Assembly (NCBI GenBank): GCA_977020255.1
Contig: CDROCS010004666.1
Span: 1 to 64,000 of the forward strand
Source: Obrimoposthia wandeli
Lineage: Eukaryota
DNA: 64,000 nucleotides
Direction: 5' to 3'
Positions 21,452-39,300 of this stretch are shown one piece after another. The notes beneath the pieces are model-generated. The model searched no databases. It saw nothing but the letters and a program-made list of their open reading frames with translations, and was not told where the DNA came from. Both the position numbers and the translations under genes were made by a program. Position 1 is the first letter of the stretch; every line of letters starts with the position of its first letter.

Positions 21452-24259
21452 ATGATTAAGAAAGGTGATAGGCATTTGTTAGGATTAAAATTTAACAGCA
21501 AAAAGTCACGTAACCTCAATACTGGCAGTAGCCTGCAAGCAGTAGCGCAAAGGGCTGACTGGAGAAAAATTATTGTCTCGCTACTCATGGCGAGCTTTGT
21601 TGTATTCATTAATTTATCTGAAACCCTAAGGCTGCCCGAGTTATTAGTGTATGACAAATTGGTTTTTCATAGTTATGACAAGCCTCAGCAGAATCATGCG
21701 CTATTACTTGAGGTTCCCTCAGAAACACTGAATAGTTCATCAGAGCTTATGAGCATTATCATTGATCGCCTGCTGGCACACTCACCAAAGCAAATTCTCA
21801 TCCTGAATTCACTGAATCATCTCGATCAGTCACAGCAGCTAGAATGGTTAAAGAATGAATATGTAGACTATGCCCCGCCTGTCCACACAATACTTCAAGA
21901 TGGAGGCAGCATTGGCTATCAATACGATACATCAAACGCCTCAAACACAATACCACCCCTAGGCTTTTCTCTTCCAGCTTCTGCTAGCTTTGGCATTACT
22001 CGCGCTATGCCACTTGAGATTTCAACCAGCGAAGAAATACTGCTGGGCTTTCAGGCCAAGCTCACAAAAGGAAATAAAAAAAGCTCAGATTTCATCTATA
22101 TTAATTTTAATCAAGGCACTAAGCCCATTCCACGCTACCCAGCGCAAAAACTACTCGAAATTGGCATCATTGATGAATTGATAAAAGATAAAATCGTACT
22201 TATCACCTCACCTTTAGATAACGTTACGGCCGGTTTGACGACTCCAAAAAATAATTATTCCGAGCCACTTTCCCCCGACCTTATACAGGCGATGGCACTT
22301 AACTCGCTGATTAATCAATCAGATATCAGCATGCTAAAACCTTGGCAGGCTGCTATCGTTTGCTTTTTATTATTTATGTTTTACCTATTTACGTTTCAAT
22401 GGCTAAATATACGTTTTGGTACGGTAATTATTGCCGCGTCTGGCATTACACTCCTTTTAATCGATTGGTATCTATTAAGCTTCCACTATTTTTACATACC
22501 CGCATTTAGTTTCATCGTTTCAATTGTCGCGGCATTATTAACGGCGATCCCCTTGCACCGCATAAGAGAACAGGGTGTCATCGAGACTTTGCACCTAGAT
22601 ATACTGTCGCAACTAAAATCTAAAAAAACACCCCATAGCTTTTATCAAGTAGAAGACCCTTGGAACCATATCATCGTTTTTATCAATCAACATTTACTGT
22701 TAAGTCGCTCTATCTTATTAGAACGCGTTGAGAATGATCACCGCGTCAGAGAAATAAAAAGCCTAGGGTGCAGCATTGATGACATAGCAGAACAGCGTCG
22801 AGATTATACACGCTTCCCTTATGATAAATCGTTACAGCAACAAATCCCTCTAGACTTAGAGAATCGTCATTATTTCAAACAGAGCTTTGAAGGCGAAAAA
22901 CAATTCCTGATTCCGCTCCGATTTGCGGAAGAGGTTTTAGGTTTCTGGGCTTTTACTGTCATTCCAGATGAGCACTGGGATCAGAATAAATTCTTTTCAG
23001 ATATTAATGTCTTTGCCAAACAAATAGGCTTGTTAATACATAACCGCAAAGCCTTTAATTACGAAGACAGTATTAATAGCAAGCTGCTTACGCAGCTACT
23101 GAATTTCAACCTAGGTTCAGGTAACCATAAATCGCTAAAGTCTGCAGTCGATGGCATAAATCATCGACTTCGCATCATGGAAGGGATATTTGATGGCATG
23201 AGTTCTGCCGCTATGCTGTATGACCTGTTTGGTCAGATTATTAGCAGTAACCACCTAATGGAGCAACTAGCTCGACAGTCTCACTTGTCTATTTATGACC
23301 TCACCTCTTTAGATTTAATTGCACAAGCCTGTGGTATTTCTAAAGACGAAGCACGCAGCCGCTTAAGACATGTTGCAATGAATGCAGCCAGCATTGACCT
23401 ACCACTCTCAGAATTGATTGATAATCGTCAGTATTTGCTTCGTATACGTTCTATCAAACCAAAAATCCAAACGACGGCAACCCTTAATGATAATGACCTG
23501 CCGTTTGAGTTATTGGGGATCCTATTCGAATTTATCAATGTCACTCCAATACAACAGAGATTTACCACCGACATCATCGTCTATGAAAATCTCTATTCAA
23601 TGCTAAGAAATGATCTCAGTGCGCTCTCTTTGTGCCAGCTACAATTAAGCTTATCACCCGCTTCCGATCAGAAACTGATGGCACAAATGGATCAAACCCT
23701 ACAGCACTGCACAGAAATAGTGACCAATGCAGAGGCATTGCTAAATGACACCTCAAGTAACCTAGCCAGCACAGGAAAACTATTACAACCCTTAGTGCTG
23801 CTTAAACGAATATTGGTTGAACTAAAAGAGCCTGCCGACCAAGCGAAGCTGTCGTTCAACGCCTTATTGCCAACATTCAGCAGCCTAATATTTATAGATG
23901 AGGATGAGCTTGCTCACTTGCTGATCCAAAGTTTACGTTTACTAGTAGAAGATGCGATACCCGATACTCAAATCAGCATCCTTTTCACGGAACAAGAGCG
24001 AGCAGATAAGCTACTGCATAACGGAAAAATCATGATAACCATGAGTAATGTGGGCTATGGCATGCCACAAAAAGAATTAAATGCCGAAAGAAAAGACACC
24101 AGCTATATTGAAGCCGATACCCTCTCACTATTTAAAAAAGCCGTCATGAACGTATCCCCCTGGCAAGTCATCGTTACCAATACTTCTCAAGTGGGCACGG
24201 GGTTCGAGATCAGTATTGAATTACCGATTATCAACTTTTATAGAACGATTGAGATCTAA
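21452..24259 (+). CDS. CHASE2-domain membrane sensor with GAF/PAS-like and degenerate histidine-kinase domains
   Basis: CHASE2 hallmarks (LPELLVYD..., TP...SPDLIQAMALNSL) followed by 3 TM helices, a GAF-like region, a PAS-like region (FDGMSSAAMLYDLFGQIISSN), an H-box lacking His (YSMLRNDL) and G1-like SNVGYGMP. Confidence 0.75.
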   Translation: MIKKGDRHLLGLKFNSKKSRNLNTGSSLQAVAQRADWRKIIVSLLMASFVVFINLSETLRLPELLVYDKLVFHSYDKPQQNHALLLEVPSETLNSSSELMSIIIDRLLAHSPKQILILNSLNHLDQSQQLEWLKNEYVDYAPPVHTILQDGGSIGYQYDTSNASNTIPPLGFSLPASASFGITRAMPLEISTSEEILLGFQAKLTKGNKKSSDFIYINFNQGTKPIPRYPAQKLLEIGIIDELIKDKIVLITSPLDNVTAGLTTPKNNYSEPLSPDLIQAMALNSLINQSDISMLKPWQAAIVCFLLFMFYLFTFQWLNIRFGTVIIAASGITLLLIDWYLLSFHYFYIPAFSFIVSIVAALLTAIPLHRIREQGVIETLHLDILSQLKSKKTPHSFYQVEDPWNHIIVFINQHLLLSRSILLERVENDHRVREIKSLGCSIDDIAEQRRDYTRFPYDKSLQQQIPLDLENRHYFKQSFEGEKQFLIPLRFAEEVLGFWAFTVIPDEHWDQNKFFSDINVFAKQIGLLIHNRKAFNYEDSINSKLLTQLLNFNLGSGNHKSLKSAVDGINHRLRIMEGIFDGMSSAAMLYDLFGQIISSNHLMEQLARQSHLSIYDLTSLDLIAQACGISKDEARSRLRHVAMNAASIDLPLSELIDNRQYLLRIRSIKPKIQTTATLNDNDLPFELLGILFEFINVTPIQQRFTTDIIVYENLYSMLRNDLSALSLCQLQLSLSPASDQKLMAQMDQTLQHCTEIVTNAEALLNDTSSNLASTGKLLQPLVLLKRILVELKEPADQAKLSFNALLPTFSSLIFIDEDELAHLLIQSLRLLVEDAIPDTQISILFTEQERADKLLHNGKIMITMSNVGYGMPQKELNAERKDTSYIEADTLSLFKKAVMNVSPWQVIVTNTSQVGTGFEISIELPIINFYRTIEI

Positions 24260-24639
24260 TGAATCAACCAATAAATAAAAAACGTATTTTACTCGTAGAA
24301 GATGATGAAGCAATTTCAATGCTAACCCTCATGTTTCTAGAACAGCAAAATATCGACACGGTTCACGCTAAAGATGGTGACGAAGCTTTATTACAGCTAA
24401 AAAACCAAAACTTTAACGTGATTATCACAGACTTGGTTATGCCGCAAAAAGATGGTTTAGCGTTTATAACCGAGCTGCGAAAGCTAGGTAATACTACTCC
24501 CGTCATCGTCACTAGCGGTATAACTGACAAACGCATTCATGACCAACTCTATGCAGTGGGTGTTGAAAAAATTTATACCAAACCTTTATTGCCAGAGGTC
24601 TACCTTGAACTCATAGAACATATTAAGCAGTATCTATAG
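24259..24639 (+). CDS. Single-domain response regulator (receiver only)
   Basis: LLVEDD, phospho-Asp ITDLVMP, TS and TKP are conserved. TAATG overlap with the sensor gene. Confidence 0.92.
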   Translation: MNQPINKKRILLVEDDEAISMLTLMFLEQQNIDTVHAKDGDEALLQLKNQNFNVIITDLVMPQKDGLAFITELRKLGNTTPVIVTSGITDKRIHDQLYAVGVEKIYTKPLLPEVYLELIEHIKQYL

Positions 24640-27600
24640 ATGGATATATTCCCATTAGCTATATTTCCAGAAGGAGGCCTAGCGAGTTCCGTTGTGGTCA
24701 CCGTTTGGATCGGCATATGGGTGGTTACTTTTCTTAACCTGCGCTTTGGTTTCGCACTTTCCGGTTTGGTTGTGCCGGGGTACTTGGTTCCTCTACTCAT
24801 CGTCAAACCTATCAGTGCCGGGGTCATTCTTTTAGAAGGGTTAACGACCTATTTCATTACGGTATTCTTAGCTAGCAGTTTAATGCGACGGATGGGCGCT
24901 AGCGAGATGTTTGGCCGCGACCGATTCTTTGCTTTAGTCTTAGTCAGCATTGTCGTTCGTGTTCTTTTCGATAGCTTGCTATTACCCACCCTAGGCCAGG
25001 CACTCGTGGATGCCGGTATAGACTTTGATTACCGCAATAACTTACAAAGTTTTGGCCTGATTATTATTTCGTTGATCGCTAACCAAATGTGGAATGGCGG
25101 AGTCAGACGTGGATCTTCTTCTTTACTGCTCTATCTCGGCATCACTTACCTCATTGTTAACTTCCTGATTATTCCCTACACCAATTTCAGCATCTCGAAT
25201 TTAAGTTTTATCTACGAGGATATGGCCAGCTCAATTTTAGCAACGCCAAAAGCTTATATTATTCTACTTACCGCAGCCTATATTGCCTCAAAAATGAATC
25301 TGCGCTATGGCTGGGAATTTAACGGCATACTTATTCCTTCTTTATTAGCACTGCAATGGTACGAACCCAGCAAGCTAGTCGTGACGTTTTTGGAGGCCTT
25401 TCTTATATTAGGTTTAGGCCGAATATTCCTTAAGCTGCCGCTGTTTGCTAACTTTAATATGGAAGGCTCACGCCTGCTGTTGTTTTTTTTCAACCTCAGT
25501 TTTATTTATAAATATTTATTAAGTCTGGTACTCATAAAATGGTTTCCAGAAGTCAAAGTTAGTGATTTCTTTGCTTTTGGTTATCTACTCAGTACGCTCT
25601 TGGCATTAAAAATGTTTCAAAAGGACATCCCAACACTGGTGACTCGAGCGACACTTCAAACATCAGGTTTTGCGCTAATATTCGCCAGTATCGTCGGCTT
25701 TGCCCTAACACTGATTGTATTTTCGCCCCCTCCCTCAAGCAATAACTCGTTTGCAAGTACCGATATTAAACGGGCAGAAAAAACACAAGAACAGCTGGTA
25801 ATTGCGGGCTATTCTAACTTCTATCAATCACGCACCTTGCAATATAGCCAGCCGACACTGCAAGATCTGGCAACCTATGAACAAGCATTCATTGCCATTA
25901 GACAGGCCTTGCTAACCACTACAAGACCCTTGCCTGCGAACCATCCAAAATTAATGGAAGCCTATGCATTGCTTTCAAGTATCGATGTCGAAATGATTCA
26001 AACACCAGAAAACTCGTTAATTATTAAAGATACTCGCCCAGAAAGAGCCGGTGGACTGGTGCTGATCAATCTCAATAAATCAACGGGTCTAACCTTAGAA
26101 GTGCCTGCGCCACTGAACGAAAATGGCATTGCCGACCTCAGCCTTAGAATGTACAGCCACTTAAACGCCAAAGCCCTAATCTATGCAGGCAGTCATCGCT
26201 TTCAAGACCCTCTTCGACAAAGTGATATGTTAAATGTACCACGCAGTTTTTTCCAAATTGCCCATGAACGGCTGAGTGAACGTAATGTTTTACAATTACG
26301 GGGTTATACCCGCTCTGCCGCACGTGAACTCTATGGTCAGCGTTTTGATGACGAGCTAATGACAGCACAAGACCTGCCAAACCAACTTTGGATTAAAGAA
26401 AGTTTGCCAGAGAGTTTAAATGTTACTCAGTTAAAAGCGGGCGTTAATAATTTTGTAATCAGCTGGAGCGCCCCTCATTTTTCCAATCGCCAAAGAGAAT
26501 ATAGCCGTGAAGGTTTTGCCGAACTGATGCTGACAAACTCTGGCATGAGAAAGTTAATTGCAAGTTTTGAACCCGCCATAGAATCAGGAAGAAAAACAAA
26601 CATAGATATTGAACAAACGCATTTACAAGACTGGCTACTGGCACATAAAGAAACGTGGGCGGCCAAATACAGTGAACGCTTTCAACTTGCTCAGCTCAAT
26701 GAATTAATATTTTTTGACGAACAAGTACTTTCCCCCTTATTTCTATTTATAGATAAAGATCCATCAACTAAAAACCTGCTTGATCAGCAGCAAGAATTAC
26801 AAAGCATAAACCGAATGGCTCAGGCTATGGGCTACCATATTTTGTTATTACAAGAACCCGATTCACGAGAGCAATTTCTAATTCTTACTGAGTTGACCTC
26901 AGATAAGCAACGTTATTGGGGAAGCTATATTTTTCGAATGGGTTCCACAGCGCCTTACTTTATAGAAACACCGCACCCACTAACCGAATCAAATAGCTTT
27001 GATTATGCGATTGACCTATTTCACGATTTACAGGCACAAGTATTGTTAGTGCCAACGAGTCACGCACTGGCAAATGCAGATGGCCGCTCGAACATGCTGG
27101 CACGAGATAATAAAATCACCTTATTTAATCGTGTTCACCAAAGTCTATTACGTCATTACCAAGCACAAGGACCGTTAGTTATTCAAACTCGAGGATTAAG
27201 TGCAAAACAGTGGAACCCACAGAATCCTGTCGATATTCGCTTAGCTATTTGGCAAAACTCAAACACACAATTTACTTCACCACTAATCGACAATCTAACT
27301 CGAAAAATAACGTTAAGTGGACTCAGCTATGACTTAGTCAACGGAGAAGCGGCTGAAGCAGGTTATGAAGACCACTACAGTTTACTCAGCCAGTACATGC
27401 CCGTAGCACGCAAGGCTGACATGGTAACGCTGTGGTTATCAGAAAATTTACGCCGAAAAATAAACCGAGGCACTGGCACAGCTACTTATCGCAAACAGTT
27501 TATGGCTATGCAAGTCGAGCTCAAAAGCCGTGATATTGAAAACTGGCTTAATACCATAGCGCGTAGTGATAAAAAGTTACGCCCTAAAATTTATCAACAG

Positions 27601-27879
27601 CTTCAAGCTTTCATTTATTCTGGCGACATAATAAGACTGGCTAATGCATTGGATGCACTTAAATCAGCAGCACCTGATGCAATGCAGCTTGAATACCTTC
27701 AAGACAGTGTTTCAAAACAATACTTTATTGCTATCACAGCACAAGATCAGTTGGTAGCACTTGCCAGTATCAATCCGTTAAAACCCGAAGAGCGTATTAT
27801 TTTAAAGGGCAGATCATCTATCACTAATTTTATCAAACGTCAGTCAGGCTGGCTGTTAGTATTAGAAGGAGGGCAATAA
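24640..27879 (+). CDS. capC: Poly-gamma-glutamate biosynthesis CapC/PgsC-family protein, doubled and fused to a large C-terminal domain
   Basis: SGLVVPGYL, FGRDRF and GLIIISLIANQM match the CapC motifs AGLVVPGYL, YGRRKF and GVIVPGLIANTI. A second diverged repeat follows (NGILIPSLLAL). About 700 aa of soluble C-terminus. Confidence 0.85.
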   Translation: MDIFPLAIFPEGGLASSVVVTVWIGIWVVTFLNLRFGFALSGLVVPGYLVPLLIVKPISAGVILLEGLTTYFITVFLASSLMRRMGASEMFGRDRFFALVLVSIVVRVLFDSLLLPTLGQALVDAGIDFDYRNNLQSFGLIIISLIANQMWNGGVRRGSSSLLLYLGITYLIVNFLIIPYTNFSISNLSFIYEDMASSILATPKAYIILLTAAYIASKMNLRYGWEFNGILIPSLLALQWYEPSKLVVTFLEAFLILGLGRIFLKLPLFANFNMEGSRLLLFFFNLSFIYKYLLSLVLIKWFPEVKVSDFFAFGYLLSTLLALKMFQKDIPTLVTRATLQTSGFALIFASIVGFALTLIVFSPPPSSNNSFASTDIKRAEKTQEQLVIAGYSNFYQSRTLQYSQPTLQDLATYEQAFIAIRQALLTTTRPLPANHPKLMEAYALLSSIDVEMIQTPENSLIIKDTRPERAGGLVLINLNKSTGLTLEVPAPLNENGIADLSLRMYSHLNAKALIYAGSHRFQDPLRQSDMLNVPRSFFQIAHERLSERNVLQLRGYTRSAARELYGQRFDDELMTAQDLPNQLWIKESLPESLNVTQLKAGVNNFVISWSAPHFSNRQREYSREGFAELMLTNSGMRKLIASFEPAIESGRKTNIDIEQTHLQDWLLAHKETWAAKYSERFQLAQLNELIFFDEQVLSPLFLFIDKDPSTKNLLDQQQELQSINRMAQAMGYHILLLQEPDSREQFLILTELTSDKQRYWGSYIFRMGSTAPYFIETPHPLTESNSFDYAIDLFHDLQAQVLLVPTSHALANADGRSNMLARDNKITLFNRVHQSLLRHYQAQGPLVIQTRGLSAKQWNPQNPVDIRLAIWQNSNTQFTSPLIDNLTRKITLSGLSYDLVNGEAAEAGYEDHYSLLSQYMPVARKADMVTLWLSENLRRKINRGTGTATYRKQFMAMQVELKSRDIENWLNTIARSDKKLRPKIYQQLQAFIYSGDIIRLANALDALKSAAPDAMQLEYLQDSVSKQYFIAITAQDQLVALASINPLKPEERIILKGRSSITNFIKRQSGWLLVLEGGQ

Positions 27880-27880
27880 T

Positions 27881-30538
27881 ATGAGAATACTTGGTCGAAG
27901 CTTATTATTCTTATTTTTAATACTCCTTATCTGGTTAGCTTATGGAATTTGGTTACAGGTTTTCCAAAAAGATCATCTCGATCTTGCCACCCCATATCCT
28001 AATGCGGTAACTGAACGCAACGATGTCTACCTGCTTTCAACGTCAAAACCTGCGCAAATATCCTCTAGCTCTGCAACGCCGTCAATTTCTGCAGCGCAGT
28101 CTTCACCCGCTACACTGAATTTTAAACTAGACCAAAGAATTGAGCGCTTACAAATTGCCGCTATTCCTTTATTTCAGCTTTCAGATGAATACCCCGAGCG
28201 TTTTAATCCCGCCAATGTCGAAGCCATGCGTCAGCATAAAAACACTACAAAATATGCCATTGAATACACTCTATTCGATGATAAAAACACTCAACTCAGC
28301 CATGAAACCTATTGGTTTAATGCTAAACCGACACCTTGGGCCCGACAGCAAGATAACGCGCTAGTACCTGAACTTTTTCTGTCAGATTCCAACTACTACG
28401 CAGGAGCTCGGCAAAGTGTTTATTTACGCATGAAAAACTGGCCTACCGCTCGAAAACTTGAGCTTCGCATGCACCATCAACCTAAGGAAATTGCAGGGGC
28501 ATCCGTTTATATCCGTCAGCATTTTAATCGCAGTAAAAAAGAGGTTACTACTTTATGGCGAAAATTAAGCGATACAAAGCGCACTCGCTATACAGAAAAT
28601 GTTCATATGTATCCTCACTATATTTGGTCCAGTAACGAAATAGATTCTTTGTTATCAAATTATTGGCAGCAACAAGGGCCAGAAGGCATTGTGGGAAAAG
28701 ACTTCACAACCATGGGCTTATACCGAGTTGTTGGAGTTCAGCCACCCGACCCAATAGAAGGTACAAGTCCCACATTACCTGTATCAAGCTTGATTGTGAG
28801 TGAAAATAAAAACCTTACCTTTCCTATTCATTCTGCAGGCGAAGTGCAACTTTCTTTTCGGCCATTACAAGCCAGTGCCGTGGGAAAAATATTCACTCTT
28901 ACCTTGCATCCATTTGATAGCTCTCCAGCCATTATTATTCAACAGTTAATTAGTCAAACAATCACAACCTGGACAGGAATATTACCAAAAGGCCTACTTG
29001 AACTCAGTGCAGATCCAGCATTAGAAATTGAGTTTCAAAAAGTGCCTGATGAAATGACAGAAAATCATAAACAACACCTTTCACGGTATTATTGGGTAAC
29101 AGAAAATAAACCACTCACCTACCCTATCGAACACTGGCGCGATCAAAAAACACCCGTAAAAATTGAACTGCGTGCAATCATTAATCAACCTGGCCTTGTG
29201 ACGGCAAAAGATGCCAGCGTCAGTATTAACTGGATTAGCGCTAATAAGGGAATCTTAGATGTTCGTAACAGCCAACAAATCACCCTCAACTATCAACTTT
29301 CTCGCTACGAACATTTATCTAATATCAAAACAGTGGGGCCTGATGGCGAAATAGCAGACAGTATTTCCGAAGAAAAATCGGCTTATTATCTGGCAGCCAA
29401 TAGTATCAATCAACTGCAAATAACATCCACCAGCCCAGTACTGGTTCAAGTTTCAAGCCGACCTTTTGAACTCCCTTTAGTGCGCACAGTGCCCACACAC
29501 AACCGCGCATGGTTTGATGATGAAGACTACCTACCGACTTGGTTCCCTCTTCGCCCTGAGCAGCATCATATTCTGGTTAATCAAGGTGACAGTGCAATGA
29601 TACGGACTCAGCATCGCCCTTTAATCGATCGCTATGCGGCGCTGGATGAAGAATTTATCGGCGAGCAAATTCCGCCGAATCAAGCGCGGGTGAATCTTAA
29701 TCAAATACTGTTTCCTGTTAACAATGAAGAACAACTTATCGCTTCCTCATCCGCTAGGCGCTATCAACAATTAACCACAAACAATACGTTATTGAAGGGA
29801 GCTATAAGCCTCAATTTCATCAACGACAATAACAATCGCTCTCTGTCGCCATCACTGATTTATCAGAATAATAAAAGTGCAGCTCGCGAAGTCACTATCA
29901 AACTCGATCATCAAGATATTCATAGCCAATGGATCAGCGGTTATTGGGGGAAAATCACCCTACCTAAAATTAATAAAGGTGTGCGTAAACTTAATATAAA
30001 AAACTCAACTGAGAATTGGTTTGTGAACCATGTTGATTATATAAAAGGGGCGAATTATCTATTATTGAAAGAGGCCTTTTCGTTAAAAAAACAAAGTACG
30101 ATTACTTACACTATTAAGAAAAACAATGCTCAGACTTTACTAAATTTCACCTACTATCAAGAGTTCGCCAACAAGGCTAAGCAAGGTGCTCTACCTGAAG
30201 ATACTGTTATAGAAGTAAAACTTTTGAATATCAAAGAATCATCAGCCGCTAATGTTAGCGAGGCAATGAGCAGCAGCATGACCATCCCCATCCGCCACTG
30301 GCGCTTACTTCCAGACCCAGGCGCGACTGAACAAGGACTCATGCTCAACCGTGGTGGCAGAAAAACCAATAGCGGAACGCATTTTGTTTATAGTCTTGGC
30401 GATGATCTTCCTGCAGGAGAATACCAAATCCAATTCAGCTTAATCGAAGGTTCTGAAGGGTATTTAAACGTATCTCGCCTCACCCCAAAACCGGGTACCG
30501 AAATAGACTATTTCAGAGAATCAATCCATGCTTATTAA
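27881..30538 (+). CDS. Uncharacterised N-terminally anchored, probably periplasmic beta-rich protein of the cap-like operon
   Basis: Single hydrophobic N-terminal segment (SLLFLFLILLIWLAYGIWL) followed by 850 aa soluble sequence. Starts 1 nt after the capC stop. Confidence 0.8.
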   Translation: MRILGRSLLFLFLILLIWLAYGIWLQVFQKDHLDLATPYPNAVTERNDVYLLSTSKPAQISSSSATPSISAAQSSPATLNFKLDQRIERLQIAAIPLFQLSDEYPERFNPANVEAMRQHKNTTKYAIEYTLFDDKNTQLSHETYWFNAKPTPWARQQDNALVPELFLSDSNYYAGARQSVYLRMKNWPTARKLELRMHHQPKEIAGASVYIRQHFNRSKKEVTTLWRKLSDTKRTRYTENVHMYPHYIWSSNEIDSLLSNYWQQQGPEGIVGKDFTTMGLYRVVGVQPPDPIEGTSPTLPVSSLIVSENKNLTFPIHSAGEVQLSFRPLQASAVGKIFTLTLHPFDSSPAIIIQQLISQTITTWTGILPKGLLELSADPALEIEFQKVPDEMTENHKQHLSRYYWVTENKPLTYPIEHWRDQKTPVKIELRAIINQPGLVTAKDASVSINWISANKGILDVRNSQQITLNYQLSRYEHLSNIKTVGPDGEIADSISEEKSAYYLAANSINQLQITSTSPVLVQVSSRPFELPLVRTVPTHNRAWFDDEDYLPTWFPLRPEQHHILVNQGDSAMIRTQHRPLIDRYAALDEEFIGEQIPPNQARVNLNQILFPVNNEEQLIASSSARRYQQLTTNNTLLKGAISLNFINDNNNRSLSPSLIYQNNKSAAREVTIKLDHQDIHSQWISGYWGKITLPKINKGVRKLNIKNSTENWFVNHVDYIKGANYLLLKEAFSLKKQSTITYTIKKNNAQTLLNFTYYQEFANKAKQGALPEDTVIEVKLLNIKESSAANVSEAMSSSMTIPIRHWRLLPDPGATEQGLMLNRGGRKTNSGTHFVYSLGDDLPAGEYQIQFSLIEGSEGYLNVSRLTPKPGTEIDYFRESIHAY

Positions 30539-31571
30539 ATACTTAAAGCACAGTCTACAATTAACAGTATGGGCATTAATCGGGGGATGCATGATGTCGA
30601 TTCAAACCAGTCAAGCGACCTGCATGAAGCACCGTGTGCAAGAACAGCACAGCCTTAAATCTCTCACTAAGATTTTACGTTCGCAAAAACATGTTCCTTT
30701 TCAAACCGTCGATTCAGTGCGCTATCAATACGCAAAATCACTTTTTAAGCAATTACTCAATCCGCCTTTATTAACAACAGCAGCGACAACTGAAACGACA
30801 ACTGAAGAGAAGTCACAACCAGAGCTGTCCGATGCCGTTAAAACCTTAGCGACCCAAGCGGGTCTATGCTGGCAGTGGCTAACGATTTCTCATCGAGAAC
30901 AAAATCATACGGTATTGTTATTAATGGAACATAGCGATGATGCCAATAAGGGTGCACAAGGCCAAGGCGCTTATTTGTTTGCGTTAAATCAACCACTGAA
31001 CTTTGTTATTCAAGCCCCTCATCAATACTTTGATTACGCGACTGGAAAAATCGCGCTGCAGTTTTTCTTTGAGCAAGGCCTGCGCGCAATCACTATGAAT
31101 AGCGTTCATAGAAATCAAACGCCACAATCTGACTTAGCCCATCAGGCTAACAGTTTATTTTCCGCCTTTGCCGAAGCTTATGCAGAGGTTTTGTTAGATA
31201 AAACAGCCGATGAACAGACAACGAAGCAGGCTGAAGGCTATCTAATACAAGTCCACGGATTCAGTAATAAACACCGACGCAGCGAGGCCGGAAAAAAAGC
31301 CGATGTTATTATTAGTAATGGTACTCGCTCTCCGTCTCTTTATTTACGACAGAGCCAAGAGCGCATCAACAATACAACAGCGTTCAAAAGCTACCTCTAC
31401 GGTATAGATATTGATGAACTAGGTGGCAGCCAAAATAGCAGCTTGGCAATACTTAGGCAGCTAAATCAACAAACCCATTTTATTCATATCGAATTATCAG
31501 CGGATGCACGGAAAGAACTCAAGCGATCACCTAGCCAACGTGAGCAACTGTGGAGGAGCTTGCAACCATGA
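30528..31571 (+). CDS. Putative exported Zn-dependent amidohydrolase (possible gamma-glutamyl polymer hydrolase)
   Basis: Signal-like N-terminus and the motifs IQAPHQYFD, LIQVHGF and HIELS. This is the APH...HG...E pattern of Zn-exopeptidase-fold hydrolases such as phage PghP and N-formylglutamate amidohydrolase. Confidence 0.6.
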   Translation: MLIKYLKHSLQLTVWALIGGCMMSIQTSQATCMKHRVQEQHSLKSLTKILRSQKHVPFQTVDSVRYQYAKSLFKQLLNPPLLTTAATTETTTEEKSQPELSDAVKTLATQAGLCWQWLTISHREQNHTVLLLMEHSDDANKGAQGQGAYLFALNQPLNFVIQAPHQYFDYATGKIALQFFFEQGLRAITMNSVHRNQTPQSDLAHQANSLFSAFAEAYAEVLLDKTADEQTTKQAEGYLIQVHGFSNKHRRSEAGKKADVIISNGTRSPSLYLRQSQERINNTTAFKSYLYGIDIDELGGSQNSSLAILRQLNQQTHFIHIELSADARKELKRSPSQREQLWRSLQP

Positions 31572-34500
31572 ATAAAGCAAGATTGACCTTTCGCATACTA
31601 GGACTGATAAGTTTATTACTCTGCCTATCTGCCAGTGCAGAAACAGCGGTGCTCGCGAATAATCTTTCTAATAACCTCTCGAACAACCTTTATTGGGATG
31701 ACATCCCACGCTGGGAACATGCCACGGGTAAGGTTTCAAAAACAACGATTAAACACTCAGACTGGGATGCCGTAAACTTAGGCCCTGGAGCAATGGTCAC
31801 CTATCGCATTCCACGCAGCGCATTTACTCGCATTGTCAGTGATGAAAAAAAGAGCGCTGAAAAAAATAGCTTTGAGAAAATTAAATTATCTCGTGGTGAT
31901 GGCAGCGGCCTATTCACTGAATTAACACAGATTGAAAAACCCCATACGGTGGATAAAAAAAACAGCAGCCTGCTATTAATGCCTGAAAATAATTACTGGC
32001 AGCTATTAATTCATAATGCCAGCGAGAAATCGGTCATATTATCCGTAATGACCAGCAGAGCGAGTGAAGCAGCGCCTTTCCCACAGGCACGAACACTCAT
32101 CACTCCCAATGCCAATCCTATTAATAATAAAGACCAGTGGTTAACGACCCCCCATCTTAGCCAACGCGATCTATTTGCTTTTAATAATGGCGATACTAAA
32201 ACGACCTACTCGGTAACAGGCCCCAGAGTTATTGAAGTGGAAAGTATATTATTAGCCGCCGGAATGGATGAATCACTGCCCAGTTATTTAATAACCAGTG
32301 AGTTAGACGGTGCACCTTGGCAGCAGTGGCGACATCAGGCAGCGCTTTACCCTTTTATTCGCCGCAGTGACATGCTTAAAGATAGCAACGAGCTGCTGCG
32401 CAGCACTTATACTGAAAAATATTTTTTAAAAATCCCAGACGGCTCACATACGTTAAGCTTTAATACTTTACGCCCCATCGCTTTGCGAATTTTTGCAAAC
32501 CAGCCTTGGGGATTATTAAGTAACGAAGATTCACTCTACCCAAGATTTAAAGAGCAGCAGCAAGCTCAACTCGACTATCAAAATACACTTAACAATTTAA
32601 CCGATACATTACTAGCCAGCCCAACGGCGGCAATTACTCAGCTGCTTAACCAGTGGCAAGATAAACAAGACCCCATCACGGCATCAAAAGAAAGAGTCGT
32701 TAACCGTTCGCAATTTTATCGTGCTTTGGCAGCCAATACCTCCAGACCACCACTGAAAACTTTCAATCTTAAGCCTGTAGTTGCTTCATATACCTCCATT
32801 CAAAAACACCCTGACCTGATAGACAATAGCTCAGTAGACAATAGCTCAGCAGACAGCAGTTCAGAAAGCGCTTCAGACCACGATTTAGAAACGGGATTAG
32901 AAAACCATTTAGAAAACCGGGCACAGACTCAAACCTCTAGTATATTTAACCAACTAGCCGAAAAAGATCTGTTAACGTTTTCTCTACCTAATCGATCAGG
33001 TCCCTCAAAACTTCGCGTTCGCTTGGCAGGACTCAACCAGCAGCCAGCGAAGTTTTTACTCAGTAATCAGCAAGGGCAAAACTCTACAATTTTTTATTAT
33101 CCACAGTTTAGATCCAAGCTATTAAATGCGAGCAATCACAACTTAGAAAAAGAGGAAGTTTTAATCGCCGAAGCCTTTATTCCTCTGAGCAATGAAACAA
33201 AAACGATCACAATACAAACCGTATCTGGGGCCACCAGCAAACTGCAACTAGCCTACCTCATGGGTAAGCAACTCAATTTGCAGCCTGACGAATTGATGCA
33301 AGCCCTAAGGCAGCTCGAGACTGAATCGGATAACAGTATTATTGCTTACTTGCAGGGCAAGTACGTCGAAAACAAGGCTCATGCCGACTACCGTTTATTG
33401 CAATCATCACTTGCAGATCTGGCACACAGAATTCAAATACGCTCACAGCAGTTCGAGCAAACCTCGCTCAATAGCGCTAGCCCATTAATCATCAAGCCTG
33501 TGGTCGCTAAACAGTGGCAACAAACGGTAAATACCTTAATTGATAAAAAAGAATGGGCGGCTGCAATTGATATCGTCGCCCCCCTAACTCGACATAAAAA
33601 TATCAGCATTCGTAATGCGGCGGCTACACTTCAAGCCGATATATTATTGGGCGCGGGCGAGTTCATTCTTTATCAGCAATGGCTGCTGAAATTATTAACG
33701 TCCCCAGCCTATGCGGATTTAAGCGGCTATGCCGAAAGTATGCTCATTGAGCGTTATAAAAAATTAGAACAGTGGGCCGCGCTGGAAAAATTATCTGCCT
33801 ATCGATTTATGCAAACTTCTGATATCGCCTATTTAGAATTAATCGAAACTAGTTTAACCAGCGAATCTAGCCTGCCACTTAAGCAGCAATTAGCCTTAAT
33901 TCATCAAGTGCTTAGCGCTGAAAAGATTACCGTTCAGCCAGCTTTAGCAGACAGCCCAACTTTATGGCAACCACTGCAAACAGATAAACTCTCTGCTGCG
34001 TCAACAGTGCTGATGCATGGACACGATTTTGATAATTACAGCACTCGCTATACGGCAAATCCCTCACAAGCACTAGAGTTCACGATAGAAGGCCCTACCG
34101 TATTGGCAATCAGTTATCGAACGCTATTGGCTAAAGGCACTGCACAAAGCCCTTACAGCTGGTTAACCTTACACGATAATCAACAAGCCCATTATATTCC
34201 CACCTTCCAGTCTGCCCTATCCAACAGTGTCTCTATCGTCGGGGCCGACAGGCAAGTTAGCGGTGAACAAAGCATTGAATATCAGCTTGGGGCCGGTCGT
34301 CATCAAATACACATTCGCCCTGAGCTGGGTGATCTTGTTATCGGCTTATCCACTCGTACCAGCGCGGTGAATGAAGACGCGAGACTTACCCTGCTAAGCC
34401 AAGGCGAGATCGATACTGAACTCGATACTTCATCCAAAATTAAACTATTCAAGCAACAGCAAACCCATGCACATCCGGTTAAATCGTTACTGCAATTACT

Positions 34501-36394
34501 TTGGGCTAGTGAGCATTCACCTAAAAAATCCCTGCCCTTAATTGCCCTAGGCAATGCCATCATTGAGCAATACCCTAGCAGCCCATTACTCAATCGTTTA
34601 AATACTCGCCTGAACCAATTCAGCGGTTGGCAATTAGAGCAGCAACTTATCGACAGTGCTGGCAAACGTTCTATTACATTTAAAACAGCCCCTGTATCCA
34701 ATCCAAAAACCCGCATAAGACACAACTTAAACCGACCCGATGTTGAATCTGGCCAATGGTTATCCGCACACAGTGACTTAAGCTTTAATATCAATAGCAC
34801 CAGCCCTATTGCGCTTAAATTACAATTAAAACAGCTGTCGTTACTCAACGGTTATACCGAAGGTGCAAGCATCCAGTTATGGTTAAACGAGCAACTTTAT
34901 CGCACAATTCATCTCACCAGTAACCGTCCATTCAAAAGCCTAATACTGAATCTAAAAGCCGGTAATCAACAACTGCGCATCGCCATGAAAGATGCTAAGT
35001 CAGATCAACAAGTGCTCTTTAGAGGATCACGAAAAGCGCCCAATAAACCATGGCAATTAATTAATATGCCAGCCAAACAAGCTTATGCCGTCAGTTTAAA
35101 AGATAACCCAGTAACGGTATTCGCCGCGGCGTCTGACTGGCTGCGTATTGATGAGCTGATAAACGGACAAGTACAGCGCAGTTATCACTATCAAGAAGAA
35201 AACGGGACATTAGACCTGCTACCCCAAAGCGGCCAGTCAGAGCGTTTATTAAGAGTTTATAAGCTTCGCCTCAAACCTTATTTAACAGATTTAGCGTCGA
35301 GCTCAGCTCCGAATAATCTCGTTAAAAAAACAACCTATCCATTTACCCCACAGCTTAAGTCTTGGCAGCTGGTCGATCATTTAGAATTAGGTGAAGAAAA
35401 TGAAGGCACTTGGGGTGGCTATTTAAAACTGTCCAACCAGGGGTTTAGCGATGATCCCGAAGACGATATCAGCTCTTCAATGAATGCCTTTCAACTGGGC
35501 CATACTTATCGTAAGAAAGTATCAGACGACCATTACTGGACCAGCACAACCGGCGATTGGCAAAGCAATGCCTACTGGAAAAGTGATACCTTTGTCCGCT
35601 CCCTCAATACCAGCGGTGAAAACAATGGTAATACCTTAGGCACCGATCAAAAACTGATTATGACCGACCCAGAAACAGATTGGCAGTTTAGCCTGAACGC
35701 GAAAGCTCTGTATTTTCAGGCCTCAGGCGACCTTAGTGATCATGTATTACACGCCTATACCGAGGCCCAATACCGACACAACTGGAAGTTTAATCGTAAG
35801 CAAACTCTGGATGCTTCTTTAACCGGATTTGCTCGTTATCTAGATAACAAATCACCTCGCGCAGCCAATAACATCGACCCACTGGTGTATAGCGATTACA
35901 AACGTGACCATACTTATGGCTGGCGCTTAGCCGGTAATTGGCGTCATCGTTTATGGCACGACAGCCGCTGGAATATCGGTAGCCAGTTGATCAGCAATGA
36001 ATCATTGCTCACTCTTGACCAAGCCTCCTTACAAACGGGCTACCAGCAATACTTCAACGGTTTGACCGCCGCAGTATCACTGCGTCATGTTCAGCGCTTT
36101 GCTGACGATGACCGCCAGTTAAAAACGGTTAATAACATAATAAAAGGCAGCCTGCGCTTTCATCAATGGAATGTAAAAGGCAACGAAGGGTATTTTGGTC
36201 TAACTTTAGAACATGACCTATCCATTGAAGAAAGTGCCGTAGCGCTGACCTTTGGTTTTAATCACAGTGATGGTCGCGGTGTGCGAGATTATTTGCCCAC
36301 AGAACTGCCAATGCGTGATCTCTATCAACAACAAAGCTCGCAGCAAATAACTTCGCAAAAAATAAATACATTATCGGATCCGTCTTCACTATGA
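31568..36394 (+). CDS. Large exported protein with a TPR-like helical region and C-terminal outer-membrane beta-barrel
   Basis: Signal peptide from ATG 31568 (ATGA overlap; SASA|ET). Helical TPR-like stretch at about aa 660-760. The last ~330 aa show alternating aromatic/hydrophobic strands (WGGYLKL, FQLGHTY, YTEAQYRH, WRLAGNWRH, LQTGYQQY, ALTFGF). Confidence 0.7.
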   Translation: MNKARLTFRILGLISLLLCLSASAETAVLANNLSNNLSNNLYWDDIPRWEHATGKVSKTTIKHSDWDAVNLGPGAMVTYRIPRSAFTRIVSDEKKSAEKNSFEKIKLSRGDGSGLFTELTQIEKPHTVDKKNSSLLLMPENNYWQLLIHNASEKSVILSVMTSRASEAAPFPQARTLITPNANPINNKDQWLTTPHLSQRDLFAFNNGDTKTTYSVTGPRVIEVESILLAAGMDESLPSYLITSELDGAPWQQWRHQAALYPFIRRSDMLKDSNELLRSTYTEKYFLKIPDGSHTLSFNTLRPIALRIFANQPWGLLSNEDSLYPRFKEQQQAQLDYQNTLNNLTDTLLASPTAAITQLLNQWQDKQDPITASKERVVNRSQFYRALAANTSRPPLKTFNLKPVVASYTSIQKHPDLIDNSSVDNSSADSSSESASDHDLETGLENHLENRAQTQTSSIFNQLAEKDLLTFSLPNRSGPSKLRVRLAGLNQQPAKFLLSNQQGQNSTIFYYPQFRSKLLNASNHNLEKEEVLIAEAFIPLSNETKTITIQTVSGATSKLQLAYLMGKQLNLQPDELMQALRQLETESDNSIIAYLQGKYVENKAHADYRLLQSSLADLAHRIQIRSQQFEQTSLNSASPLIIKPVVAKQWQQTVNTLIDKKEWAAAIDIVAPLTRHKNISIRNAAATLQADILLGAGEFILYQQWLLKLLTSPAYADLSGYAESMLIERYKKLEQWAALEKLSAYRFMQTSDIAYLELIETSLTSESSLPLKQQLALIHQVLSAEKITVQPALADSPTLWQPLQTDKLSAASTVLMHGHDFDNYSTRYTANPSQALEFTIEGPTVLAISYRTLLAKGTAQSPYSWLTLHDNQQAHYIPTFQSALSNSVSIVGADRQVSGEQSIEYQLGAGRHQIHIRPELGDLVIGLSTRTSAVNEDARLTLLSQGEIDTELDTSSKIKLFKQQQTHAHPVKSLLQLLWASEHSPKKSLPLIALGNAIIEQYPSSPLLNRLNTRLNQFSGWQLEQQLIDSAGKRSITFKTAPVSNPKTRIRHNLNRPDVESGQWLSAHSDLSFNINSTSPIALKLQLKQLSLLNGYTEGASIQLWLNEQLYRTIHLTSNRPFKSLILNLKAGNQQLRIAMKDAKSDQQVLFRGSRKAPNKPWQLINMPAKQAYAVSLKDNPVTVFAAASDWLRIDELINGQVQRSYHYQEENGTLDLLPQSGQSERLLRVYKLRLKPYLTDLASSSAPNNLVKKTTYPFTPQLKSWQLVDHLELGEENEGTWGGYLKLSNQGFSDDPEDDISSSMNAFQLGHTYRKKVSDDHYWTSTTGDWQSNAYWKSDTFVRSLNTSGENNGNTLGTDQKLIMTDPETDWQFSLNAKALYFQASGDLSDHVLHAYTEAQYRHNWKFNRKQTLDASLTGFARYLDNKSPRAANNIDPLVYSDYKRDHTYGWRLAGNWRHRLWHDSRWNIGSQLISNESLLTLDQASLQTGYQQYFNGLTAAVSLRHVQRFADDDRQLKTVNNIIKGSLRFHQWNVKGNEGYFGLTLEHDLSIEESAVALTFGFNHSDGRGVRDYLPTELPMRDLYQQQSSQQITSQKINTLSDPSSL

Positions 36395-39300
36395 TGCAGC
36401 CAATGAGTATGAAAGCATTAAGCCAACAGCTGAACACCCAACTATGCATAGGATTAACCGATCTTAATAAGCAGCTTGAGGGTAAAAACATTGAGCGCTG
36501 CCAGAAAGATTTATTACTGTTTATTAAAGACCAAAATAGCTCAGAAAATGAATTGCACGCGATTATGGTTACTTTTTTAATCACTGAACTTAAGCAACAG
36601 TTAGAAACCCTTGATCAACAGCAAAAACATTACCAAAGCTTTCTAACCAATAGTCGTAACTCGGCGACTGAACTCGAACGAAGAAACTATATTTTACAGT
36701 TTGCTAGTCAACTAGGAGCGTCTCAAAAACAACTGCGTGGTGATAAAAAAGCTTTTAAACGTTATTTTGGCGCCGACGCTATTTCTGAACGCTATGCACG
36801 ATTAAACAAAGATAATGAACACTACATCACGTTTATACTCGATCGTTTGGCCCACATTACCAGCGATTGGTTTACCGAGCTCACTACCCTAGAAATTAAG
36901 CAACACTGGCAACAGATTCAACTTGAACCTCTGCTGGTTAATATGCTGACACATTTCCAAGAAGATCGACTCAAGCATGCCACGTTTAAATGTTTAAGTT
37001 TCATCATCCGTCGCTTAAAAGGAAAGAGTGCTGACTATTTGGGCAGCTCGACTATTCGTTATGTATATCGCTTTGCGCAAGATTACCGCCAGCCTATTTG
37101 GACCCAAGTTGAAGCGGCCGCACTGATTGCAGAAATAGAACCACAGAGCCTACTCTCCATAGCCCAGCGTCACTTTAATGCTGCAAAAGATACTGTAAAA
37201 GATGGTGCAAAGAATAGTGCAAAGGATAGCAAAAAAGGAGATGACCTTATTTTCTTACGACGTCACCTGCTATCAATCATTGCAGACCACGCCAATGCGC
37301 ACCCGCCTTTATTAAGCATCATTCCCTTAGCCGTGAACGACCCCAGTGAATTTGTGCGCCAAGGCTTGGTCAATATACTGCCAAGCCTACCCGATGACTT
37401 AGTCTCACAATTGATCATCCCGCTCAGTGAAGACCAGACGGAACAAGTACGCGCAAGTTTAGTATTGCAGTTACCAATACTGGCTAAGCAAGCTGCATTA
37501 AGCGAGGTTTGCAGCCAATTAATGTTAAATTTTCTGCACGCTCAACAACCCCTATTTGTATTAAGAACCACACTGATCACCACCGTCGATTTTTTCCGCA
37601 GTATCAATAAAAGCTCAGGCTTAAACGTTACAGAAAAAAGTCTTGCTGCCCAGCCTATTTACCAGCAATTGATTGCAGCGATATCTGATTTGCACACACA
37701 GCATAGCGCGACCAAGGTCAGACGCTGGGCAGCCAATGCCCGTGAACAACTGTGGGCAACGGTGTATAAAATTTGTCGTGAGCATGAATTTTCTGCCGCT
37801 CAAGATCAATTTCAAAAACGCTCGTTAGCAGATCTTTCGTTAGCAGAGCCCTCGACAGACAATCTTTGTTTAGGCGATTTACCCTTAGGTAAGTCTCGTC
37901 GCCTACCCAAGGCCATAAGAAAGCATTTAACTTCAGACATGCAAACACGCTTATTAGCCGTGCAAGCTCAAGATGGTTTTGGCTTCGACATCAGCGCCAA
38001 TAAAGTAATCAGAGACCATAAGGTAAAATTTAGGCTCTGGCGCTTTATTCACGAACTACGAAACAGTGCCACCGATAAACGCCAAAATTATTCCCACATG
38101 ACAGGGCGAGTCTATTATGGCGAACAACATATACCGTCTAATATCGTATCTGAACGCAGTGCGACCAAAGTACCTGGGGAGCCTTTATTTCAAGATGACG
38201 AAGAAGGCTGGCGTCCTTACCTGCCACTGGTCGATCAGGTTATTTCAGCCATTGATCAAAACTGGCCAACCAAAGCCATCAAGATCATCACCAGCGAAGG
38301 CATAACCTGGCTTACGCCACCGAATTCTTTGTGGCAGCGCTTAACCGCACGAGCCACACTGGTATGGTATTTCAAAAGTTTTGCACAACTACGCAACTGG
38401 TCTGAAGGGGATGCTGAAGCCCCTGATGCTTATTTAAAATCTCTTGTTGATCTAGGCTTTACCATTGAGCTGACGCCACATACTGATCATAATAAAACCG
38501 CCTTTAAACTCGACCAGCAAGTACAGCGCTTTTTCCCGGTCTTTTTCCCACCTTGGTTTATTGATGGCTGGCGTCAATTCGAAGACTACTTTTTTTCCGT
38601 TTATCAAAACAGTCTCAACCATTTACTGATATTTTGCAGCGGTCTGTCGCTGCTATTTTTTGGTAGCCATTTAGGGGCCAACTGGCAAATGCGTAAAGCA
38701 CGCGCCAAGATTCCCTTAGTCATTGGCGGCTGGGGCACGCGTGGAAAATCGGGCACCGAGCGCCTAAAAGCCGCCTTATTCAATGCTATGGGTTATCACG
38801 TAGTATCAAAAACTTCGGGCTGTGAAGCGATGTTTTTACACGGTACTGCCCTGCAGCCGCTGCACGAAATGTTTTTATTTCGCCCTTACGATAAAGCAAC
38901 TATTTGGGAACAAGCGCAGGTAGTAACGTTATCTGAAAAACTAGGCGCTGATGTTTTCTTATGGGAATGCATGGGGCTAACGCCGCGTTATATTGAGATT
39001 TTACAACAACAATGGATGTGTGATGACATTGCCACCATCACCAACTGCTATCCCGACCATGAAGATATTCAAGGCCCTGCGGGAGTTGATATTCCCAAGG
39101 TGATGCAAAAGTTTGTACCGAAAAAAAGCATATTAATTACCAGTGAAGAAAACATGCGTCCGTTTCTTGATGATGCGGCGCGCGAGAAAGAAACCGAACT
39201 GCATAAAATTAATTGGCTAGATGCAGGATTGCTTACCAACGATGTATTAAATCGTTTTCCTTATGAAGAGCACCCTTACAATATTGCACTAGTAATGAAG

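Follow-up and report, generated by a model that had tools for sequence, protein, structure and literature searches.

Poly-γ-glutamate (γ-PGA), the polymer associated with PgsB and PgsC, is attacked by hydrolases of the PghP/PghL (YndL) type (PF05908; structures 3a9l, 5onj and 21dc), which have an α/β zinc-carboxypeptidase-like fold. In PghL, His41, Glu46 and His102 coordinate the zinc, Glu165 acts as the catalytic base, and the active-site cleft binds a γ-PGA hexapeptide (PMC6506827). PgsC/CapC of Bacillus (TIGR04011) is a protein of about 150 residues. Here, we describe a much longer PgsC/CapC protein of 1079 residues, encoded by an open reading frame (ORF) at 24640..27879 of contig CDROCS010004666.1 (Obrimoposthia wandeli assembly GCA_977020255.1, positions 1 to 64,000; this stretch of 64,000 nucleotides is referred to as the window, and all genes and domains described lie on its forward strand). 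The membrane domain of this fusion is followed by a soluble part that consists of two homologous units of about 280 residues, A and B, and a tail of 134 residues. Our analysis indicates that both units descend from the same ancestor as a hydrolase-like protein of 347 residues encoded two genes downstream (30528..31571), and that they have most likely lost the metal site of such an enzyme.

A preliminary description of this DNA had pointed out three related sets of motifs, all of which are found exactly where they had been placed in the two ORFs: LEVPAPLNE...LQLRGY at residues 486-556 of the fusion (26095-26307), FIETPHPLTE...IQTRGL at residues 774-853 (26959-27198), and VIQAPHQYFD...IQVHGF at residues 160-245 of the 347-residue protein (31005-31262). 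The resemblance that had been claimed between the segments is borne out as well. Pairwise BLASTP gives E-values of 1e-5 for A and B, 7e-5 for A and the 347-residue protein, and 5e-3 for B and the 347-residue protein. These values are modest when taken by themselves, and they would leave some room for similarity by chance or low complexity between segments of unrelated fold. However, comparison of the family alignments by hhalign reaches E 2e-31 for A against B (probability 99.9%, 244 columns), E 7e-12 for A against the 347-residue family (97.5%) and E 2.6e-10 for B against the same family (96.8%, 212 columns, extending to the C-terminal xELS..R motif). In addition, a tblastn search with the fusion against a Marinobacter locus matched unit B to the 303-residue orthologue of the 347-residue protein (30% identity over 109 residues, E 8e-6), and the alignment pairs ETPHPLTE with QAPHQFYD and IQTRGLS with LQLHGFS. 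Independent structure models of both proteins also match the same entries of the PDB. Taken together, the profile comparisons, structural matches and cross-species alignment rule out an artefact, which we consider next to impossible. Judged from these alignments, units A and B are tandem, anciently duplicated paralogues of the 347-residue protein.

The extent of the copies needs to be revised, as the positions of the motifs were correct and their spans far too short for the domains themselves: unit A covers residues ~381-655 (25780..26604) and unit B residues ~656-945 (26605..27474). Comparisons were based on alignments of, initially, 15 and then 107 diverse fusions (22-30% identical to the query) and of 16 standalone members of the 347-residue family. 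The C-terminal tail (residues 946-1079; 27475..27876) is a confidently modelled α+β domain. It was also considered as a third, truncated unit, an idea which was rejected since profile comparison revealed no homology to unit A, unit B or the 347-residue family. Within the tail, D1022 and L1000 are conserved in 96% and 94% of the 107 fusions, respectively.

The fold of the three segments was addressed by AlphaFold modeling, followed by comparison with the PDB using Foldseek and VIA-align (background Z 7-8). The model of the 347-residue protein has a predicted local distance difference test score (pLDDT) of 79.7 and a predicted template modeling score (pTM) of 0.81. Foldseek matched it with a probability of 1.00 to CCP5, the PghP proteins of phages PM1 and PhiNIT1, PghL/YndL, Atu2144, N-formylglutamate amidohydrolase (FGase) and Csd4. 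In VIA-align, the highest score was obtained with Atu2144 (2odf; Z 13.1, 188 residues aligned, root-mean-square deviation (rmsd) 3.5), followed by PghL (5onj; Z 10.4, 173 residues, rmsd 3.8), FGase (2q7s; Z 10.3), PghP (3a9l; Z 10.0) and the M14 carboxypeptidases (Z ~9). The soluble module of the fusion (residues 372-1079), modeled with the 107-sequence alignment, reached a pLDDT of 92.8 and a pTM of 0.91, and it is therefore predicted to form one rigid unit of three parts. Unit B (model residues ~290-570) resembles 2odf (Z 10.9), 2q7s (Z 10.3) and CCP5 (Z 9.1), with lower values for PghP/PghL (21dc, Z 8.4; 3a9l and 5onj, Z 8.2). For unit A (model residues 10-273), the matches are to members of the fold class other than PghP, namely succinylglutamate desuccinylase (1yw4; Z 8.3), EutE (7.7), carboxypeptidase A (7.4) and REP34 (7.3). 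As these values are close to background, the matches of unit A are suggestive when taken alone, and its fold is assigned largely through the homology between units A and B. When the 347-residue model was used to search the ESM Atlas by shape, a PF14102-bearing cluster (template modeling score 0.62, 268 residues aligned) was independently retrieved, together with an FGase cluster. The common PghP/M14-type fold that had been suspected thus receives support from models with Z 7-13 and from hhalign E-values down to 2e-31, and the models place all three segments in the zinc-carboxypeptidase-like class of folds, together with PghP/PghL, FGase/Atu2144 and M14.

Within this class the segments stand apart from the named families. 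Scans with Pfam yielded no match of units A and B or the 347-residue protein to PF05908 at E<=1, and among the 16 standalone relatives the best value for PF05908 was a non-significant E of 0.034, while a single relative reached E 0.14 for PF05013. Comparison by hhalign with phage PM1 PghP (ORF34, confirmed as PF05908), which entered as a single sequence and not as a family profile, gave a probability of 1% and E 0.044 with the xELS..RK motif alone aligned. Searching the PDB sequences by hmmsearch with the profile of the 347-residue family returned nothing at E<=10, and Pfam and NCBIfam scans of the fusion, the 347-residue protein and divergent orthologues found nothing significant beyond PF14102. 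A language-model search for look-alikes placed PF05908 as the nearest named cluster (score 0.76), which served as a lead only. The segments do not belong to M14 in the strict sense: the 347-residue family has HxxxD instead of HxxE...H, units A and B lack the motif altogether, and Pfam M14 is not matched. The best structural matches of the 347-residue protein and unit B are the N-formylglutamate amidohydrolases (PF05013; 2q7s, and Atu2144, 2odf). FGases work in the cytoplasm on small-molecule substrates, whereas the proteins described here are predicted to be exported or periplasmic and are encoded within a polymer-synthesis operon. The likeness to PghP/PghL lies in the fold, in the functional tie to a PgsB/PgsC polymer and in short motifs. 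APHxxxD (APH followed by an acid), QxHG[FY] and xHxELS..R of the 347-residue family, the last two sharing xHG[FY] and xELS..RK with PghP, resemble APHAGGIE, SYHGY and VQLELS..RK of PM1 PghP. The differences are that the acid follows the histidine at +5 and is Glu in PghP/PghL, while in the 347-residue family it is Asp at +4; that units A and B and the 347-residue protein carry an extra N-terminal helix/hairpin; and that units A and B have no zinc histidines and are fused to a membrane protein.

In the 347-residue family, H165, D169, H243 and E322 are invariant in all 16 relatives, and each terminates a predicted strand, an arrangement also seen in PghL. By motif and strand-end position, these residues are candidates for a PghL-like zinc site and catalytic base, and the protein, a candidate zinc amidohydrolase, is apparently an active enzyme. 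The situation is different in the fusions. In unit A, the counterpart of H165 is Ala490 (Ala in 72 of the 107 fusions; the six most frequent residues do not include His), D169 corresponds to Glu494 (93/107, 87%), H243 to Arg554 (101/107, 94%) and E322 to Glu628 (94%). In unit B, the same positions are Arg779 (91/107, 85%), Glu783 (100/107, 93%), Arg851 (106/107, 99%) and Trp932 (103/107, 96%). The complete quartet reads A-E-R-E for unit A in 66 fusions and R-E-R-W for unit B in 83, compared to H-D-H-E in all 16 standalone proteins, and the pair of histidines is kept in none of the 107 fusions in either unit. Hence, the preliminary description was right in that both copies carry Arg in place of the second metal-binding His, and also in that the first one is missing from copy A. 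Copy B was thought to retain this first His, which holds for the clade of the window and is otherwise rare: His is present in eight of the 107 fusions, including this clade, and Arg prevails across the family. At this position (residue 779; 26974-26976), the His of the clade together with E783 restores half a metal site, and R851 still occupies the position of the second ligand.

Units A and B thus appear, from the alignment, to have kept the fold and lost the catalytic residues throughout the family, as is characteristic of pseudoenzymes, and they are most likely inactive, zinc-free pseudo-hydrolases. The earlier suggestion that both domains are catalytically dead is in line with the missing His pair and the intact quartet of the standalone proteins, inactivity being read here from the sequence. 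Alternatively, one or both units might still be enzymes that are metal-independent or use different ligands, for example in trimming, transpeptidation or anchoring of the polymer. Unit A does keep E494 and E628, which correspond to the metal-binding acid and the base, and E783, H808, N812 and D814 are kept in unit B. However, neither unit has the His pair in any fusion, unit B has Trp at the position of the base in nearly all of them, and we know of no metal-free catalysis in the zinc-carboxypeptidase fold; we regard this alternative as very improbable. The loss of the metal site is also not accompanied by decay of the pocket. The substituted positions rank among the most conserved of the fusion alignment, as do H808 (90%), N812 (93%), R838 (93%) and R938 (94%). 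Since conservation of 90-99% is among the highest of the alignment, the substituted pockets are suggested to be ligand sites that are under selection for a non-catalytic use rather than relics. Altogether, we consider the structural and evolutionary statement on the module, comprising fold, paralogy and loss of the metal site, to be very probable.

Carboxypeptidase folds that have lost catalytic or zinc residues have been described before. AEBP1/ACLP, CPXM1/2 and fungal Ecm14 are such proteins, for which a binding role in the context of the extracellular matrix has been proposed (PMC11266112, PMC7706225). These M14 pseudo-carboxypeptidases are eukaryotic, occur as single copies and are not fused to a synthase. 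In contrast, the units described here form a bacterial tandem with Arg at metal positions, are fused to PgsC and have an apparently active paralogue in the same operon.

The membrane domain of the fusion (residues 1-371; 24640..25752) is related to Bacillus PgsC. The protein matches PF14102 with 129.2 bits (cut-off 27) in two stretches, which places it in the PgsC/CapC family, and both copies (24709-25110 and 25285-25629) were also recovered by a six-frame search. The match to NCBIfam TIGR04011 (56 bits, E 5e-15) is below the equivalog cut-off of 96.45. Thus, according to these profiles, the membrane domain is a member of the PgsC family, yet not an equivalog of Bacillus PgsC. Apart from PF14102 and a PgsB-like ligase encoded in the operon, which both systems have in common, the membrane domain is duplicated here, about 700 presumably periplasmic residues are added, and there is no PgsA or PgsE partner. 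Neither Pfam nor NCBIfam scans yielded a domain match for these soluble ~700 residues, and public annotation labels the whole fusion simply PgsC/CapC. The architecture is widespread: a profile search of 1.84 billion representatives gave 1387 matches at E<=1e-3, of which 356 passed E<=1e-30 (representatives at 50% identity), and nearly all relatives at E<=1e-30 have 1050-1110 residues and the same architecture. The ESM Atlas also contains a cluster of PF14102 proteins with 726 residues, and the profile search returned representatives of 600-690 residues that cover the soluble module alone; these may be single-unit or split variants, or equally truncated metagenomic genes.

Hydropathy analysis of the membrane domain suggested six membrane segments for each PgsC repeat, about 12 in total, with the arginine-rich loops on one side. 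For Bacillus PgsC produced in Escherichia coli, PhoA fusions have located the C-terminus to the periplasm and only the region around residue 73 to the cytoplasm (PMC7490850). The RR..R.DR loop at residues 79-96 of the fusion corresponds to this cytoplasmic region. A topology of the membrane domain with both N- and C-terminus outside is therefore favoured, and the soluble module is most likely periplasmic, as judged from loop charges and the PhoA topology of Bacillus PgsC (PMC7490850). This fits the side of the membrane that had been assumed initially.

The 347-residue protein has an N-terminal hydrophobic helix (residues 3-21) and an IGGC motif, which suggests that it is exported as well, possibly as a lipoprotein. 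Similar arrangements occur in polysaccharide systems, in which periplasmic modules without or with weak catalytic activity, such as BcsB and the C-terminal domain of PgaB, bind the polymer at an inner-membrane synthase, and the operon also encodes a dedicated hydrolase of the periplasm. These modules have other folds and handle a polysaccharide instead of a polyamide, so the likeness, a periplasmic module on a synthase combined with an operon-encoded hydrolase, would be one of function only. BcsZ, AlgL and PelA are periplasmic enzymes that trim or clear the polymer in systems of this kind. By analogy, it might be hypothesized that the former active-site clefts of units A and B, lined by guanidinium groups, hold a polymer rich in carboxylates upon its exit from the PgsC channel, without cutting it. 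Clefts of the PghL type, which accommodate about six γ-linked glutamates, would then bind the chain non-catalytically, and the module might pass the polymer through the periplasm towards two further proteins of the gene cluster, of 885 and 1614 residues. Trimming or clearance of polymer in this compartment could be the task of the apparently active 347-residue paralogue, and the module may take over the role that PgsA has in Bacillus. As an overall explanation, we consider a pseudo-hydrolase pair serving as the periplasmic polymer-holding module of a long PgsC to have slightly better than even chances; the more specific proposal that the module binds and guides the polymer falls somewhat short of that mark, and is suggested by the conserved residues of the pockets.

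A different role for the conserved surfaces might be protein-protein contact, by which the units would dock or regulate the 347-residue paralogue or the 885-residue protein at the synthase. The compact and confidently modelled module would provide large surfaces for this purpose, and fused units and paralogue occur always together in the same operon order, a co-occurrence that is based on six loci. Pseudopeptidases often scaffold or regulate active relatives (PMC11266112). However, the conserved residues cluster in the former active-site pocket, where Arg takes metal positions, a pattern that fits a small anionic ligand better than a protein interface, and a docking function is judged unlikely. 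It is also conceivable that the synthase cannot work without the module, which would substitute for PgsA/CapA in chain elongation or release rather than guide a finished chain. No match to PgsA/CapA (PF09587) was found in the assembly (1.35 Gb, 6912 contigs) or in the syntenic loci, and hundreds of clusters at 50% identity show the covalent fusion of the module to PgsC. On the other hand, PgsA is of another fold family, and its function is itself not settled (PMC7490850). This alternative, which we take to be quite unlikely as a separate explanation, overlaps with that of a polymer-holding module, and sequence cannot separate the two.

Several points weigh against a polymer-holding pair of pseudo-hydrolases. 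None of the three segments is linked significantly to PF05908 or PF05013 by sequence profiles, and the equivalence of the pocket residues to the zinc ligands of PghP was drawn from motifs and strand-end positions instead of residue-level superposition. As unit A retains two acidic pocket residues (E494 and E628), some residual chemistry may be possible. Net charge was considered as a sign of polyanion binding and is not supportive: the units have medians of -1 and -6, the tail of -2, and none is basic. Any binding of a polymer would hence depend on the conserved arginines of the pockets instead of the overall charge. Neither the PgsB-like nor the PgsC-like protein reaches its equivalog cut-off in NCBIfam, and the polymer may therefore not be poly-γ-glutamate. 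The absence of PgsA was determined in an assembly that possibly holds an incomplete copy of the bacterial genome. Finally, both the binding of a polymer by the module and its loss of activity are predictions from sequence and structure models.

Searches of the literature revealed neither this long PgsC nor a comparable operon in Gram-negative bacteria. Pseudo-carboxypeptidases as such are already known; the new feature is their occurrence as a bacterial tandem that has Arg at metal positions, is fused to a subunit of a polymer synthase and is paired with an apparently active paralogue. By this analysis, about 700 residues that had no domain annotation in a widespread family (more than 350 clusters at 50% identity) gain a fold, an evolutionary origin in the neighbouring hydrolase and a testable role, and they provide a clear case of a bacterial metallohydrolase that was converted into a probable binding module, with arginines at metal positions. 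If the module holds the polymer, this would be the first periplasmic handling step proposed for a PgsBC-type polyamide in diderm bacteria, and the point mutations and the soluble construct required for direct tests are identified. The system also bears on capsule and biofilm polymers of marine bacteria and on engineering poly-γ-glutamate production in Gram-negative hosts. In its widest form, it may be speculated that the module is the periplasmic conduit of an undescribed, widespread Gram-negative system for synthase-dependent polyamide secretion, in which a duplicated hydrolase, its metal site turned into a carboxylate clamp, was fused to PgsC and replaced PgsA, handing the chain to a TPR/β-barrel exporter in the outer membrane while the active paralogue polices the periplasm. 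We regard this picture as possible, and as somewhat doubtful in its entirety.

The fusion gene is part of a cluster of seven genes (21452..40707, according to the ORF coordinates), which encode a sensor-like protein of 935 residues, a receiver, the PgsC fusion, the 885-, 347- and 1614-residue proteins and the PgsB-like ligase. Neighbouring reading frames overlap or abut (24259, 24639/24640, 27879/27881, 30528-30538, 31550-31571 and 36391-36394), which suggests translational coupling of all seven genes. The PgsB-like ligase (36391..40707, 1438 residues) matches TIGR04012 at residues 764-1095 (E 3e-60); with 203.9 bits, it narrowly misses the equivalog cut-off (222.7). Its PgsB-like core is flanked by about 760 N-terminal and 340 C-terminal residues that are unexplained. 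The pairing of a PgsB-type ligase with the PgsC fusion is kept at related loci, and the same gene order was found in six loci from Marinobacter, Desulfobacula, Porticoccaceae, Litorivivens and two Oleispira metagenome-assembled genomes (MAGs), which belong to the Gammaproteobacteria and Desulfobacterota. At the Marinobacter and Desulfobacula loci, genes for proteins of about 300 residues are homologues of the 347-residue family (E 8e-42 and 1e-35, respectively). The family of the 885-residue protein (27881-30538 in the window; L001:13237-15663 in Marinobacter) shows a faint Pfam hint of CarboxypepD_reg (Ig-like) and an N-terminal hydrophobic segment, and the protein is likely another periplasmic component. 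In Desulfobacula, the orthologue of the sensor-like protein (L003:5429-8113) has a weak match to CHASE2, and the operon has no separate receiver gene. The genes of the window are bacterial, with operon proteins 80-93% identical to those of the Oleispira MAGs, and the window is probably a contig of a bacterial symbiont or contaminant within an assembly of eukaryotic size.

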